This document shows, piece by piece, positions 10,662-64,000 of a stretch of 64,000 nucleotides of DNA. Source of the DNA: Anaeramoeba ignava BMAN (lineage: Eukaryota; Protista; Anaeramoebae); NCBI GenBank assembly GCA_028826165.1, contig JAPDFW010000083.1, forward strand, positions 285,659-349,658, given 5' to 3'. A program made the translations under genes and the position numbers. The first letter of the stretch is position 1. Each line of letters opens with the position of its first letter. Below the pieces are notes generated by a model, which worked only from the letters and a program-made list of their open reading frames with translations, was not told the DNA's origin and made no database searches.

Positions 10662-12491
10662 ATGAATGAAATTATATTTTTTGGTTCAAATCAATATCCA
10701 AAACTTATAAAAAATGAACAAAATGAAATAACAAAACCAATTCAATTTAAATTTGAAAATGAAAATGAAAATGAAAATGAAAAACAAATTAAACAAATTT
10801 CATCAAGTCAATTTTCAACAATTTTCCTTTTTGAAAATGGAAAAGCAATAGAATATTTAAATGAAAATGATTCAAAATCAAATCCTCAAAAAATCCAAAT
10901 TGAAGAAAATATTCAAAAAGTAACTGTTGGTTTTTATAATGAAGCTATTTTAACAATAGAAGGAAATGTATTTGCAAAAGGATATAATATTAATCCAAAT
11001 AATCCAAAAGAATTTATCAATATTTCATCATTAATTGAAGATACAAATGATAGAATAATTGAAGATGTTGTTTCCGGAAATCAATCAATTTACTTATTAA
11101 CTTCAAATCAAAATGCTTATGGAATTGGTTCAAATGAATATGGTCAACTTGGTTTTGATTCTGAAACACTTAATGAAACACAAAAACCAATTTTAATGAT
11201 GAAAAATGTTTCTAAAATATTTTCAGGAAATTCTTCAAGATTTGTTTTTCTTTTAAATTCAAATCAAGAATTATTTGGATGTGGCGATAATAGTTCTAGT
11301 CAACTTGGATTAGGAGAATCAAGAAAAGAAGAAGAAAAAAATAAATTAACCAAAATCCAAAATATTCCAAAAGGCAAAATAATTGATATTCAATGTGGAT
11401 ATGCTTTTTCAATAATGTTGATTGAAAATAAAAATGAAAATGAAAATCCAAAAAGAAAACTTTATTCATGTGGAGATTGGATATATAATGGACTTGGAAA
11501 AGAATATGAGAATACTTATGAATTTACTGAAATCAAATCATCTTTATTTGAAAATGATGATAATATTATTGATTTTTCTGTTGGAAGTATTCATACTTTG
11601 ATTTTAAAATCAAAAGGGAAACTGATTGGATTTGGACTTAATGAATATGGTCAATTAGGAACTGGAGATACAAAAGATCAATTAATTCCAATTCAAATTA
11701 AACTTCCTAAATTAAGATTTAATGAAAATATTTCTAATTATCATATTTCTTGTGGTGCTTATAATTCATTTCTTTATTATTCTCCTCTTTATTTTTCCAA
11801 TCTTGAAGAAGATTTGATAAAATTATTTAAAAGAAAAGAATTTTGTGATATTTCATTTAAAACAAAAAATGGTTCAATAATTGAAGCTCATAAATTAATA
11901 TTGAAATATAGATTAAATCAAATTGAAAATGAAATTGAAAAACTTCAAGAAATTATTTCAAAAATCAATTAAAGAATCAAATCAAATATTTGAAATGATT
12001 TATTCAAACAATTCCAAAATAAATCCAGAATTATATTATGAAATTAAAGAAATTATAAATCCAAATGAAAAAATTGAAGAAACAATTAAAAGAATTTATT
12101 TAAATGAAAATGAAAATGAAAATGAAAAAGATTTTATTATTGAAAGAAAAGAAAAACAATATAAATTTCCTAAATTAATATTAATAATGAGAAGTGAATT
12201 ATATCGAGGAATGTTTTTATCTGTAAAAATGATACATCCAATAAAGTTACAGATTATAGTGAATTAAGTAATAAATCATTTCAAATATTTGAATATTGGA
12301 TTTATTCAAATCAAATTAAAGAAGAAATTGAAATTACACAAGAAATAATTAATGAAATTCAAATTGGAATTGATTATTTTCAATTAAATCAAACAAATCC
12401 AAATTTATTTGATTTATTAATTAACAAATTTAATAATCAAATTCAAAATCAAAAAACGAAGAAAAAGAAAAATAAATGTTTAATTTTTTAA
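10662..12491 (+). CDS. RCC1-repeat + tandem BTB/POZ protein with polybasic CaaX tail
   Basis: GSNEYGQLG, GDNSSSQLG and GLNEYGQLG RCC1 blades; FCDISF..IEAHKLIL and FPKLILIMRSELYRGMF BTB motifs; ends TKKKKNKCLIF*. Two apparent indels near 11965 and 12228. Confidence 0.8.
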
Positions 12492-25700: not shown

Positions 25701-27598
25701 TTAAAAATCAGCGCAAGATTCATAAAAACAAAAAACACCCGAAACTAATCCATAAAAAAGAAGGATATTTGGGAATAAATTTGGTTTCCAATATTTTTTT
25801 GAGAAAATAAAAGCAAGAAAAGTTCTTTTTTGTTTTGTTGGTTCAGCAGTAATAGATTGAACCAAGGAAACATTTTCACGATCAGCATCATCGAATTCAG
25901 TTTCAAGAACAATATCACCAACTGATTTTTCTGATCTAAGAATAGAATATTCAACATTAACACTCATTGGAGGAGCTTTAAAAATATTATCGTAACGGAT
26001 TTTTAGATAAAAAAGCGCAGGTAAAATATAAACTATAATGTTTCCTGCTAATGAACCTGTGATTGAGAAAACGGAAACAATTCCTGGAACTGTAATTCCT
26101 ACTCCAAGTGATAAGAAAAATGGAATAATAATTGAAAGAGTAGTTTGCCATTTTTTAGTTGAATCTTTGAAGACTAATTGATGGAAAGATTGTTTGCAAG
26201 CAAAAAAAACGACTGGAGAAGAGAAGATTATTGTGACTAACATTGCGAAGCGAGCTTTTAATTTTATAAATTAATTTTAATTTTAATTTTAATTTTAATT
26301 TTATAAATTTTAATTTTAATTTTAATTTTAATTTTAATTTTAATTTTAATTTTAATTTTAGTTTTTAATTTTAGTTTTAATTTTAATTTTAATTTTAATT
26401 TTAATTTTAATTTTAATTTTTATTTTTAATTTTAATTTTAATTTTAATTTTGATTTTAATTTTAATTTTAATTTTATAAATTAATTTTAATTTTATAAGT
26501 TTTATTACCTGCAATCGCCCATTTATCATTTGTCGCATAATTTAATAAAATATCTCCATGTGTATCACCATAAAATTGAAGATAACCAAAAATACCAATT
26601 GTCAAATAAAGAATACTTGCAAAATCAATAGAAGAATGATAAACAACTCTTTTCCTTTTCAAAGTAGCATTTTTCAAATTAGAAAAAACAGCAAAAAGAT
26701 TAATTTGGCAAATAAAAGCAAGAGAAATAATTGGAATTGCAAGAAGAATTTTAGGAGTAAAAGAAAATAAATGAAGTTGACTTTTTTGGACACCATTTTT
26801 ATGCAAATAATTAATAGAATGACCAACAACTTGAAGAAGAACATAAATAACGGTAACCAAAGAAATCAAACTAGTAAAACTAAGCTGAACAATTTCTTTA
26901 TAAAAGGAAAGAGGAAGACAAACAGCAATTGAAATGAGGAAAATCAAAAATTTCCGATTTCGAAAAACCGAATCATGTCCTTCAAGAAAATAATCCATTA
27001 ACGGTTTAGAAACATCTCCAATAAAACAGAAATACCCACTGTTTGCGCCAAAAGTAAGAAGAAAAACTCCTCCAACAACAAGATATGAACCCACTTTTTT
27101 GAACGCTGTTCGCGAAAGATCGCGATATCCATTCACGCCTGAAATCAATGATGCTTGTGTTAGTAATTCCATTGAATAAATCCCTAAAATTGCACTGAAT
27201 AGAAGCAATATTGATGCTAATAGCACTCCTGCTGCTTTGAATGCGAATGGTACCGCTAATGTTCCTGCTCCAATAATCGTGTTTGTTAATGTGAAAATGG
27301 ATTGTGATAATGATCCAGTGCGAATTTTTTCTTTTTGTTTTTTTATGATTAATTTTTCTTTTTCATCACTTGATTCATTTTCATTATTTGATTCATTTTC
27401 ATTATTTGATTCATTTTCTTTTTCAATTTCAATGCTTGTTTCTTTGCTTGTTTCGTTTAATTCTTCTTTATTTGAATTTTTCGATTCATCAATTGTTTCA
27501 TTTATTTCTTCATTTATTTCTTCTTTTATTTCTTCTTTTATTTCTTCTTTTATTTCTTCGTTTATTTCTTCGTTTATTTCTTCGTTTGATTTAGACAT
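25701..27598 (-). CDS. Amino-acid transporter, AAAP/SLC38-like, 2 exons
   Basis: SIFTLTNTIIGAGTLAVPFAF, AFICQINL and LTIGIFGYLQF..GDILLNY motifs. Intron 26255-26508 joins the two ORFs in frame. Confidence 0.9.
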
Positions 27599-48382: not shown

Positions 48383-50218
48383 TTATCCTTTAATAACTGC
48401 AATTGGTCTAAGTTTCACACATTTCTTTGAAATATTTGCTTCATGACAAGTTTCAACAACTTGATCAACATCTTTATAAGATTCTGGTGCTTCTTCCATA
48501 ACTAATTTTGGAGAAGCAATTCGAATTGAAATATTTTGTTTAGAAAGTCGATCCAAAACTTCTTGAAATCCTAATTTTTTTCTTGAACTATTTCTACTTT
48601 GTGCTCTTCCTGCTCCATGACAATTTTGAACTAGAATTGGTGTTAAATTTTCACTTAAAACAATATAATTGTGATTATCTTCAACTGTGAAATTGTAAAC
48701 ATAATCAATCCCAATTTCTTCATATTCATCCACTTTTATTTCTTTGAAAATACTGTTTTTTTTCAATTTGATTAATTTTTTTGAATATGGAATTTTTTGG
48801 GAATTTGATTCAAAAATTTTATCTTTAATTTTTAATTTGAATGAGGTATTTTTTCTTCGTGTGATTTTGGGTAGAGATCCCAATCTTAAACAAGCAATCA
48901 GAATTGAGGAAATGAATTTTGAGTTTTTGTGTGTGATTTTTGCATAATTTTTATTTGCTTTATAAGTGCCAATTGTATCAATTACTCCCGAAATAAAATG
49001 AGCACAAGATTTTGAGTTTGAAGTGCATAAAATTTGATCAAGATTTTGATACAATTCAAAGAGCTTTTGGGATTTTTGTTTTGATGTTTTCGATTTTGGG
49101 AAAATTTGGGAAAAAATCACTTTGATTTGGTTGATGATAGATTTTTTGCTTTTTGGGTGTTTTCCTTTATTTTTGAAAAGAATATTTAAGGAAGGATTAT
49201 TTTGAATGAAGTTTGGGAAAAAAGCTCCTAGAAGATAGAAAAGAGGAGGGAAATCAAAGGGGGATTTTTTAAAGAAAGAAGGAATTTTTGAAACGGCAAA
49301 AATTTTTTTGGAACTTTTCAAAATTTTTTGGATTTGGGAAAATTTTGGATGAAAAGAAGAATTAGGGGATAAAGAATTAAGGGAGAAAAAATGGTGATCA
49401 GGAGTGGATTTGATGAAATCCGAGGTTTTGTTCTGAAGGAAAAACTTGATAAGGGGAGCTTTTCTAACGAAAAGATTTGAAATTGGTTTCCATTCAAAAT
49501 CAAGAGAAATGGGGTTTAAAGAGGGAACAAAAAAAACAAGACCGCGATGAGAAAGACGGAAGATTTGGGAGATTTTAAGGATGCCGAGATGGGTAAGAAT
49601 AGGGGTATTAGAATGGAAGCAAGTTGAGCCGAAAGTCTTTGTTCATTCCGTCATCTGTTCCCATAAGGAGATAACTCGATGTGCCCATTGTACCTCCTAC
49701 AAGGACAGGTTGACCTGTGAGTTGGTAGTCTATGGGGATGAGGGGATGATGCGGACCAAAAGCTCTTGTGGAGCCTTTGCGATGGACAAGGCAGTTATAT
49801 ATTTTTCCATCGACAAAATGTTTTTCAAATTTTGCAATGTTATGAGAAACGTCATAAATCAAGTTCATATCAAGATCTTCAGGGGAAGCATTGAATATTT
49901 TGGAGAAGCATCTGCGCGTGAGGAACGTGATTATCTGTCTGTTGACCCAAGCGTAGTTTGCAGCTGCGGCCATTGCTTGGAGATAATTTTGGCCTTCTTT
50001 CGACGAGATTCGCGCACATGCTAATTGGCGATCGTTAACGTGTATATTGTCTCTCGCCATTGCTTTTTCCATCTCCACTAATGCGTCTGTTGCTACTTGA
50101 TGTCCTAGTCCGCGACTTCCTGTGTGGATCATCACTGCTACTTGTCCTTCTCGATCCAGTCCCATTTTCTTGGCTGCGAATTTGTCGTATATTTTATCAA
50201 CTACTTGGATTTCTGCAT

Positions 50219-50249
<31 letters not shown>

Positions 50250-52663
50250 TGGTAATCCCCGTTTTTTTGCTCTTTGACTTACTTTTTCTGGTGAAGCGTT
50301 GAGCATTCTTCCAAATTCTTCGCAGTGTTCCTTATTTTTTCCGATTTTTAATTTAAATTTAAATTAATATTAAAATTTGAAATTAAAATTTGAAATTGAG
50401 ATTGAAATTAAAATTAAATTTAAAATTGAAATTAAATTTAATATTAAAATTGAAATTAATATTGAAATTGAAATTGAAATTGAAATTAATATTGAAATTG
50501 AAATTGAAATTAATATAAAATTAAAATCAAAATTAAAATTAAAATTAATATTAAAATTGAATTTGAAATTAATATTAAATTTGAAATTGAAATTAAAATT
50601 AAAATTTGAAATTAAAATTAAAATTAAAATTATTGATATTAAAATTGAAATTAAAATTTGAATTGGAATTGATATTGAAATTGAAATTGATTTCTTTTCT
50701 GAAATTGAAATTGATATTGATATTGAAATTGGAATTGATATTGAATTTGATTTCTTTTCTGAAATTGAAATTAAAATTTGAAATTGAAATTGAAATTGAT
50801 ATTGAAATTGGAATTGATATTGAATTGAATTTGATTTCTTTTCTGAAATTAAAATTTGATATTAATATTGAAATCAAAATTGATATTGAATTTGATTTCT
50901 TTTCTGAAATTGAAATTGAAATTGAAATTGAAATTGGAATTGATATTGAATTTGATTTCTTTTCTGAAATTGAAATTGAAATTGAAATTGAAATTGAAAT
51001 CAAAATTAAAATTGAAATTGATTTCTTTTCTGAAATTGAAATTAAAATTGAAATTGATATTGAAATTGAAATTGGAATTGAATTTGTTAGTACTTTATCT
51101 TCAGGCCATGCATATCCTTCTCTAAGACACCAATCAATTCCAATCTCAAGAATTTCATTTAATTTCTTTTCATCTATTGGTATAACTCCTTTTGATCCAA
51201 CTCCAACTGGAATATGATTAAATAAACTTTGTGTTAATTCTTCTTTAACTGGTTCAATATCTTTTTCTGTTAAATTAGTTCTAATTAAACGAACTCCACA
51301 ATTAATATCTAATTTAATCATATTTTAATTTTGATTTTGAAATTTAAAATTAAAATTAAAATTTGAAATTAAAATTTAAAACTAAAATTTGAAATTGAAT
51401 TTGAATTTGATATTAAAATTAAAATTAATATTGAAATTAAAATTAAAATTAAAATTGATATTGGAATTAAAATTGAAATTAAAATTGAAATTGAAATTGA
51501 AATTGAAATTAAAATTGATATTAAAATTAAAATTAATATTAAAATTGATATTGAAATTGAATTTGAAATTAAAATTAAAACTAAAATTGAAATTAAAATT
51601 AAAATTAAAATTAAAATTTAAAATTAAAATTAAAATTAAAATTAAAATTAAAATTAAAATTAAAATTAAAATTAAAATTAAAATTAAAATTAAAATTAAT
51701 ATTAAAATTAATATTAAAATTAATATTAAAATTAAAATTGAAATTAGAATTAAAATTAAAATTGGAATTAAAATTGAAAATGAAATTAAAATTTGAAATT
51801 GAAATTAAAATTAATATTAAAATTAAAATTGAAATTAAAATTAAAATTAATATTAAAATTAATATTAAAATTAAAATTGAAATTAAAATTAAAATTGAAA
51901 TTAAAAATTAAAATTAAAAATTAATATTAAAATTGATATTGAAATTGAAATTAAAATTAAAATTAAAATTGAAATTAATATTGAAATTAAAATTAATATT
52001 AAAATTAAAATTAAAATTAAAATTAAAATTGAAATTAAAATTGAAATTAAAATTGAAATTAAAATTGAAATTAAAATTAAAATTAAAATTGAATATTAAA
52101 ATTGAAATTAAAATTAAAATTGAAATTAAAATTGAAATTGAAATTAAAATTAAAATTGAAATTAAAATTAAAATTAAAATTAAAAATTGAAATTAAAATT
52201 GAAATTAAAATTAAAATTAAAATTAAAATTAAAATTGAAATTGAAATTAAAATTAAAATTAAAATTAAAATTAAAATTAAAATTAAAATGAAGAAAAAAT
52301 ACCGAAACCAACACCACCAGGAGAAACAACAGCATCAGGATTATCTATATCAAAAGCAGCGACGTTACCAATAGCGAAACCATAACCGCTATGAACATCA
52401 GGTAAACCAATAGAAGATTTAATAATTCCAGGAAGTGTTGCCACATTTGCAATCTGTTGCACAGCTGGGAGAAATCCTCCATATCCATCGCTTGTTGTAG
52501 AACGCTTAAGCTCATCAAATACAAGCTTTTCTAATTCGCTGTTTACATAGAAAACTCCTGATACTCGCATTCCGTTAACAAATCCTTTTTCTATCTCAAA
52601 ACTTGTTGAATCAATTCTTTTTATTTTTTTTCTTAATTCTTCATATTTTTGCTTTTTTTCCAT
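48383..52663 (-). CDS. RTCB: RNA-splicing ligase RtcB, 3 exons, containing an intein
   Basis: Exons 52663-52303, 51308-51094 and 50330-48383. Motifs [70 protein letters not shown] and EEAPESYKD. With one extra A removed at about 49639: 840-aa precursor, 507 aa after intein excision. Confidence 0.97.
48623..49621 (-). mobile_element. Intein (333 aa) with degenerate LAGLIDADG homing endonuclease in RtcB
   Basis: In-frame 999-nt insert between FGST and CHGAGR. Block [11 protein letters not shown]; block B STPDHHF (TxxH); block C-like FYLLGAFF; block E-like [11 protein letters not shown]; block H-like ILIACLRLG; block [14 protein letters not shown]; block G ILVQN followed by Cys+1. Confidence 0.95.
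50345..52290. repeat. Hexamer-repeat-filled RtcB introns (50331-51093 and 51309-52302)
   Basis: (AAATTG/AAATTA)n tracts bounded by GT-AG on the minus strand, interrupted by exon 2. Confidence 0.9.
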
Positions 52664-53959: not shown

Positions 53960-54538
53960 TCAAAGAATAAAGCATTTAAAGGATTTCTTTTTAACATTTC
54001 CGAATCTATTAGAATTTTGAGAAGGATTTTCACCTTTAAAATTACGAATTTCTCTAATCAAAGAAAAAAAAGCTTCTTCAACATTAATACGATTTTTAGC
54101 AGAAGTTTCAAGAAAAGGACAACCGAATATCTTTGCGAGATCAGTACCTTCCTCAACGGAAACATCACGTTCATTGACAAGATCAGACTTATTTGCAATA
54201 ATAACCATTGGATAACTTGGTACTTCTTTTGTTTTTAAAATATAATCCCTATACTTTGAAACCTCATCGAAGGACTCCCGCGCATTCACCGCATATACAA
54301 TCATAAACCCATCACCACTCCGCAGATACGTATCCCGCATCAGTGAGTATTCTTCTTGTCCTGCTGTGTCTATAATCTCCATTCGGCAGATTTTGTTATC
54401 GATTTCGACTTGTTTTTGATACATGTCCTCAATCGTAGGTTCATATTCTTCTATGAATTGTGCATGGATTAATTGTACTGTTAATGCTGATTTCCCTACT
54501 CCTCCTCCCCCTACTACTACAACTTTGTAACTCGCCAT
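53960..54538 (-). CDS. Ras-family small GTPase
   Basis: GGGGVGKS, YEPTIED, DTAGQEEY, NKSD and ETSAK motifs; C-terminal KKKSFKCFIL CaaX; intronless. Confidence 0.97.
   Translation of the reverse strand: MASYKVVVVGGGGVGKSALTVQLIHAQFIEEYEPTIEDMYQKQVEIDNKICRMEIIDTAGQEEYSLMRDTYLRSGDGFMIVYAVNARESFDEVSKYRDYILKTKEVPSYPMVIIANKSDLVNERDVSVEEGTDLAKIFGCPFLETSAKNRINVEEAFFSLIREIRNFKGENPSQNSNRFGNVKKKSFKCFIL

Positions 54539-56128: not shown

Positions 56129-64000
<7,872 letters not shown>

Follow-up and report, generated by a model that had tools for sequence, protein, structure and literature searches.

The nearest described system is the same element. Gallot-Lavallee et al. (2023; PMC10710043) listed an intein in the RtcB of Anaeramoeba ignava BMAN among the 103 inteins of this strain; organism, gene and site are those of the intein analysed here, with the difference that the paper gives the junction as FGST/CHGE while the sequence reads FGST/CHGA (slashes mark the point of insertion). 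An identical intein is held by the GenBank protein KAJ5072100.1. In the published analysis the RtcB intein grouped with inteins of PEP synthase (PEPS), and not with prokaryotic RtcB inteins, and a jump from gene to gene was suggested. Splicing was tested in that study for three A. ignava inteins, the RtcB intein not being among them, and a literature search found no later paper on the A. ignava RtcB intein. The intein is, in short, already published, and its site was named in 2023 as well; the novelty entertained in the initial annotation has to be given up, and the rarity of eukaryotic inteins that was also invoked there does not apply to a strain with so many of them.

The classic archaeal RtcB intein (NF038162) lies in the same host family, and its Cys+1 likewise adjoins an active-site residue, but it is inserted after GFDIN and before a metal-binding Cys, some 300 residues upstream of the A. 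ignava intein, and it was absent among the sequence relatives found for the latter. Inteins of PEP synthase at T/[CS]HA[AS] (e.g., Methanotorris WP_007044344.1 and DPANN/CPR homologues) belong to the same intein family as the A. ignava intein, although their host enzyme is not homologous to RtcB, and form a clade of their own (100/99). To the published description we add a prokaryotic intein family at the same RtcB site, the decay of the endonuclease, and an assembly error with its consequence for the annotation. With a probability of about 0.7, the locus is a eukaryotic RtcB gene carrying a decayed selfish intein that would splice by the class 1 pathway and that came from prokaryotes by allelic transfer.

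The window, that is, the whole stretch of 64,000 nucleotides that was analysed, carries the intein-bearing RtcB gene on its minus strand, and A. ignava itself is the top protein match to this gene (97%). The parts of the gene are as follows.

52303-52663, minus strand: RtcB exon 1, 361 nt, starting at the ATG and closing with the first base of the GFDINCG Asp codon
51309-52302, minus strand: spliceosomal intron 1, 994 nt, GT..AG, with satellite-like repeats; missing from the transcript protein P0037
51094-51308, minus strand: RtcB exon 2, 215 nt, matching Pfam RtcB 47-115
50331-51093, minus strand: spliceosomal intron 2, 763 nt, GT..AG
49622-50330, minus strand: N-extein part of exon 3, with TFGST at its end; 709 nt in the assembly and 708 nt in every run
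49637-49638, minus strand: surplus assembly base, where a Lys codon, AAA (runs X1 and X2) or AAG (X3 and X4), is written AAAG
48623-49621, minus strand: class 1 intein, 999 nt, 333 aa, Cys1 to Asn333, with a decayed LAGLIDADG endonuclease
48383-48622, minus strand: C-extein, 79 aa and stop, with Cys+1 at 48622-48620, the catalytic His+2 at 48619-48617 and a C-terminal VIKG

Exon 3 as a whole, with intein and C-extein, spans 50330-48383 (minus strand). Exon 1 matches Pfam RtcB 1-49 and is continuous in the EukProt transcript protein P0037, exon 2 bears the metal-binding Cys124 (human Cys122), and the remaining Pfam RtcB matches, 129-342 and 348-426, fall on the pieces that flank the intein. The N-extein part of exon 3 matches human RTCB at E=8e-119, and the C-extein aligns with the human protein from Cys427/His428 through its last residue and with residues 403-481 of the Pyrococcus horikoshii enzyme. 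These searches were run exon by exon with no joined sequence, the continuous N-extein being residues 1-428 of P0037. Metal and GMP ligands of RTCB have been described, as has the guanylylated nucleophile, His428 in human and His404 in P. horikoshii (PMC8668186); human D119, C122, N226, H227, E230, H259, H353, S409, H428 and K504 are all present in A. ignava with an offset of +2. The host protein groups with eukaryotic RtcB (100/100), apart from the intein-bearing prokaryotic RtcB proteins. Judged by these residues and this grouping, the gene encodes the eukaryotic tRNA ligase RtcB native to A. ignava and was inherited vertically.

Some features of the locus are recorded here as observations. 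A Ras-family GTPase gene lies directly upstream of RtcB (53960-54538, minus strand), and the neighbours, classified by eye, are ordinary eukaryotic genes: BEACH/WD40-like (56129-63956), amino-acid transporter-like (26474-27598) and RCC1/BTB-like (10662-11972). Exon 3 and the first 130 codons of the intein (50330-49230, minus strand) have a third-codon GC of 0.32-0.36, compared with 0.05 in exon 2 and the C-extein, and the sequence turns from A-rich to T/C-rich near 49900. Intron 1 interrupts the Asp codon 8 nt ahead of the classic prokaryotic intein site, which is empty in A. ignava RtcB; introns close to empty intein sites that resemble this one were described previously (PMC10710043).

The identity of the insert is clear from several lines of evidence. 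A stop-free frame of 333 codons (49621-48623) opens with CFHSNT and closes with ILVQN, directly followed by CHGAGR. This frame matches the Pfam Intein_splicing profile PF14890 (E=2e-6, below the gathering score), TIGR01445 (E=1e-4) and TIGR01443 (above cut-off). An AlphaFold model of the intein (mean pLDDT 73, pTM 0.77) was compared with the PDB by Foldseek, and all top 15 listed matches are structures of intein-homing endonucleases, including TliVMA (E=6e-11), PI-SceI (E=7e-9), PhoVMA and PI-PfuI. The proposal in the initial annotation of an intein between TFGST and CHGAGR is thus borne out by both the profiles and the structure search. Within the intein, the following features can be located.

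49394-49405, minus strand: block B, Thr73-Pro-Asp-His76, the His invariant in 89 relatives
49205-49237, minus strand: first LAGLIDADG motif (block C), with Asn137 where 88 of 89 relatives have the catalytic Asp
48968-48997, minus strand: second LAGLIDADG motif (block E), with Ile217 where all 89 relatives have the catalytic Asp
48623-48700, minus strand: blocks F and G, with Asn310, His317, the penultimate Gln332 and the terminal Asn333

Class 1 inteins are defined by Cys or Ser at position 1, Cys, Ser or Thr at +1, and a terminal Asn (PMC4031507). The RtcB insert has Cys1, which is also the first residue in all 89 full-length relatives, Thr73/His76, His317, Asn333 and Cys+1, it matches intein profiles, and it is an in-frame insert that is missing from host orthologues and kept in the mRNA. 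Two usual, non-obligatory features of the class are lacking. The penultimate His is absent (Gln332), as it is throughout this intein family, and inteins without it are known (PMC4031507); the Asp of block F4 is replaced by Asn310, and Asn occupies this position in 89 of 89 aligned relatives. By these motifs the insert is a class 1 intein, and it is predicted to splice itself out.

Transcripts bear on the possibility that the insert is instead removed from the RNA as an intron, or that it is a prokaryotic contaminant, readings to which only its AT-rich composition could lend anything. Contig 17 of run X3 follows the genome without a break from 48383 to 50335, where it leaves the genome and resumes with the end of exon 2; it represents, therefore, a transcript that had lost intron 2 and kept the whole insert. 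Contig 20 of run X4 likewise ends at 50335 and spans the insert, and P0037 crosses both introns into the intein. The two introns of the initial annotation thus stand, with their GT..AG ends, and the RNA-seq check proposed there came out in favour of an intein. Removal as an intron is ruled out, as the insert has TG..AT rather than GT..AG ends and is retained in spliced contigs, and the host gene both has spliceosomal introns and groups with eukaryotes, which leaves either reading with a negligible chance of being correct.

The same transcripts reveal an error in the assembly. The initial annotation had described the 999-nt insert as in frame and its excision as giving a ligase of 507 aa. The open frame of 333 aa holds, but a surplus base at 49637/49638, five codons upstream of the intein, shifts the assembled exon 3 out of the TFGST frame; when this base is left out, the precursor has 840 aa and the mature ligase the 507 aa claimed. 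The surplus base is missing from all four public runs, which represent two samples and two studies, and P0037 reads straight through, so that it must be an assembly error; a genuine frameshift or pseudogene at this position is ruled out by the four runs. We infer that the base arose by polishing at a polymorphic site, as the G is missing from two runs and an A from the other two, and both variants of the codon were written into the assembly. This single base has also made the GenBank model KAJ5072100.1 (819 aa) wrong by 21 residues: the model lacks residues 403-423, in place of which it has a 64-nt intron at 49638-49701 (minus strand). Such a third intron is ruled out by the transcript contigs and P0037, which run through it. 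The skipped residues include Ser411, the counterpart of the GMP-binding Ser409 of human RTCB.

A second frameshift lies within the intein. In run X3 and in P0037 one base is inserted after 48848, among six consecutive A (minus strand) at intein codon 258, inside the decayed endonuclease; with it, the precursor would stop after 693 aa, short of the catalytic His. X1, X2 and X4 do not have this base. Either an artefact of the library or a null allele in the heterozygous state could account for it. Polymorphism is seen at three further places of the locus, the Lys codon at the surplus base and two positions in the decayed endonuclease that differ between runs, 48918 (K235T) and 48999 (H208R), which suggests heterozygosity or a mixed culture; the ploidy of the strain is stated to be unknown (PMC11550330). 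Taken together with the assembly frameshift, the extra base might indicate that the RtcB gene is dead or dying, its intein no longer splicing, with other ligases in its place, and the genome does contain two bacterial-type RtcB loci and a T4 Rnl1-like ligase. However, none of the four runs has the first frameshift and only one has the second, both exteins keep every catalytic residue and are highly similar to human RTCB, and the splicing motifs have been selectively retained. Matches to archease and to tRNA endonuclease subunits are also present in the genome. We regard loss of the gene, accordingly, as very unlikely. The bacterial-type RtcB loci are L002 (G000:C72:289701-290375) and L003 (G000:C1:1496218-1497069), the latter interrupted by repeat-rich, intron-looking stretches; the T4 Rnl1-like RNA ligase (L015:1225-2463, G000:C2) has 412 aa, with a PF09511 match (E=6e-15) and no other Pfam domain.

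While the splicing residues are intact, the endonuclease has decayed. An active LAGLIDADG endonuclease is not expected from this sequence, as both catalytic Asp residues are gone and there are large deletions, and the Pfam LAGLIDADG_3 match has an E value of only 0.05. The intein is some 75-100 residues shorter than typical relatives, its 333 aa comparing with 406-432 aa in 31 of 32 full-length relatives at the RtcB site. Among columns conserved in at least 90% of the relatives, the A. ignava intein retains 19 of 22 in the splicing domain and 13 of 27 in the endonuclease (Fisher p=0.007), a pattern that would be expected for an intein that still needs to splice but no longer homes.

The site of insertion, between Thr and the Cys-His of CHGAGR, places the residue at +2 in the position of human His428 and P. 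horikoshii His404, and the insert therefore adjoins the guanylylated His, as the initial annotation had stated. That this site is distinct from the archaeal DIN/CG site, as was suggested there, is likewise correct: the classic intein lies between positions ~91 and 578 of the NF038162 profile and the A. ignava intein at ~882. In P0178, a prokaryotic RtcB on a Logan contig, the classic site and the His site are each occupied by an intein. The location in the catalytic loop makes it very likely that the unspliced precursor would be inactive, and it had been proposed that Cys1/Cys+1 chemistry turns the intein into a redox- or metal-gated switch that keeps RtcB inactive until conditions permit. Inteins with Cys1 and Cys+1 can be inhibited in vitro by oxidation or divalent metals (PMC4031507), the presence and absence of TCEP and zinc were compared in an assay of another A. 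ignava intein (PMC10710043, Fig. 1), and the host is an anaerobe. However, neither cysteine is special to this locus, Cys+1 being the ordinary residue in 117 of 118 intein-free RtcB matches and Cys1 being universal in the intein family, and there is no extein Cys near the N-terminal junction. RtcB is already oxidation sensitive through its own active-site Cys (PMC8668186), the intein is one of 103 in the genome, and its site is not among the eight listed as shared with A. flamelloides. Domestication as a switch is, hence, a proposal to which we give little credence, and we infer that the intein behaves constitutively.

The origin of the intein is a more difficult question. An exhaustive search with the intein against 1.84 billion proteins returned 36 proteins, of which the two best matches (P0001 and P0002) are RtcB proteins of prokaryotes whose intein occupies the same T/CHGAGR site, and those that follow are mostly PEPS inteins at T/CHAA. 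A word-indexed search with the intein alone, subject to a length limit and to the biased composition of the query, found nothing, and a GTDB pattern scan found the query's own contig only. A second search, from one RtcB relative, brought the number of non-redundant prokaryotic RtcB proteins with an intein of this family, at T/CHG[AS]GR, to 39; the site is not unique to A. ignava. Named hosts include Pacearchaeota, Woesearchaeota, Patescibacteria and Omnitrophota, and two of the genes sit near archease on prokaryotic contigs. The inteins of this group (e.g., MFH1209432.1, MBI5148707.1, MBS3156620.1 and MEK6727948.1) share with the A. ignava intein the codon of insertion, blocks A, B, F and G and the lack of a penultimate His, at ~29% identity, whereas their LAGLIDADG motifs are intact and their length is 406-432 aa (350 aa in one). 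A literature search that took in neither InBase nor Dataset S1 of PMC10710043 found no description of the prokaryotic RtcB His site. PEPS inteins, like those at the RtcB His site, are inserted two residues ahead of a His, which in the PF00391 motif of PEP synthase carries a covalent phospho group and in RtcB takes GMP. Two long prokaryotic PEP synthases (P0004 and P0009) apparently have a second intein.

These relatives allow for two donors. In the maximum-likelihood tree of 43 sequences, from which P0200, P0201 and P0190 were excluded after a first tree for poor boundaries, the PEPS inteins fall on one side of a branch with 100/99 support and the A. ignava intein on the RtcB side. Over all 81 placements, the RtcB side carries a weight of 0.92 against 0.08 for PEPS with all columns, and 0.97 against 0.03 with splicing columns, the best PEPS placement being 12-14 log units worse. 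The alternative is that a prokaryotic PEPS intein homed straight into the eukaryotic RtcB gene, guided by microhomology rather than by a shared allele, as considered in PMC10710043. The two sites are alike (T/CHG and T/CHA), 57 of the 89 full-length relatives are PEPS inteins, and raw similarity is equal for the two groups (29% identity with RtcB-site and 28% with PEPS inteins, HMM scores 162 and 164); diagnostic columns and HMM scores gave no separation of an RtcB-site from a PEPS-site origin. AU tests are also compatible with such a jump, the maximum p for some placements within the PEPS inteins being 0.09-0.20, and they do not reject a position of the A. ignava intein outside the prokaryotic RtcB inteins (p=0.062); the branch of this intein is biased in composition and, at 2.6 changes per site, very long. 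Against a PEPS donor stand the placement weights and likelihoods, the coincidence by which the same rare jump would have to hit exactly the codon that 39 prokaryotic RtcB inteins already occupy, and the host's own PEP-utiliser gene, the one such match in the genome, which is free of an intein at the PEPS site. Direct homing from PEPS is thus unlikely in our view, and the tree and placement weights, the identical codon of insertion and the lack of an intein in the PEP-utiliser gene together make same-site, allelic transfer from a prokaryotic RtcB the likelier origin. Because the host gene is eukaryotic (100/100), it would be the intein that moved and not the gene. No second copy of the RtcB intein was found in the A. 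ignava genome. When the N-extein was examined for co-conversion, every block of 30 residues scored as eukaryotic, and the last 26 residues scored low (0.46, compared with 1.07 +/- 0.21 and a minimum of 0.40), which is at most suggestive of flanking sequence co-converted from a prokaryotic donor.

In our account, allelic transfer is joined to a conventional mode of expression. Removal of the two introns would yield an mRNA for the 840-aa precursor. Going by the motifs, an N-S shift at Cys1, aided by Thr73/His76, would be followed by transfer to Cys+1, and cyclisation of Asn333 with a subsequent S-N shift would release a ligase of 507 aa, its His430 (human His428) brought back together with those residues of the N-extein that bind metal and GTP. 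The intein may be seen as a selfish element whose homing cycle is almost over, with a decayed endonuclease and a splicing domain presumably retained because imprecise loss would destroy the active site. Most probably it arrived by same-site homing from a prokaryotic RtcB that already bore it, direction and donor being read from the trees and the shared codon. The prokaryotic RtcB inteins form the sister group of the PEPS inteins, so that the jump from gene to gene probably took place among prokaryotes. It is, on balance, more likely than not that dozens of uncultured archaea and bacteria harbour a second RtcB intein site that has apparently escaped description, that the A. ignava intein was drawn from this pool by same-site homing across domains, and that the exchange between PEPS and RtcB was a prokaryotic event.

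In summary, we provide evidence that the intein in the RtcB of A. ignava has same-site prokaryotic relatives with intact endonucleases, in view of which the published origin by a jump from PEPS looks unnecessary. Both corrections, of the origin and of the GenBank model, are of modest value and mainly to intein specialists. If true, however, an allelic origin would discount one case published as non-allelic homing into a eukaryote, and would shift the jump between PEPS and RtcB to prokaryotes, where it would connect unrelated enzymes that both have a T-C-H motif with a covalently modified His. The intact endonucleases at the prokaryotic RtcB site may permit a direct test of whether one enzyme cuts both RtcB and PEP-synthase targets.
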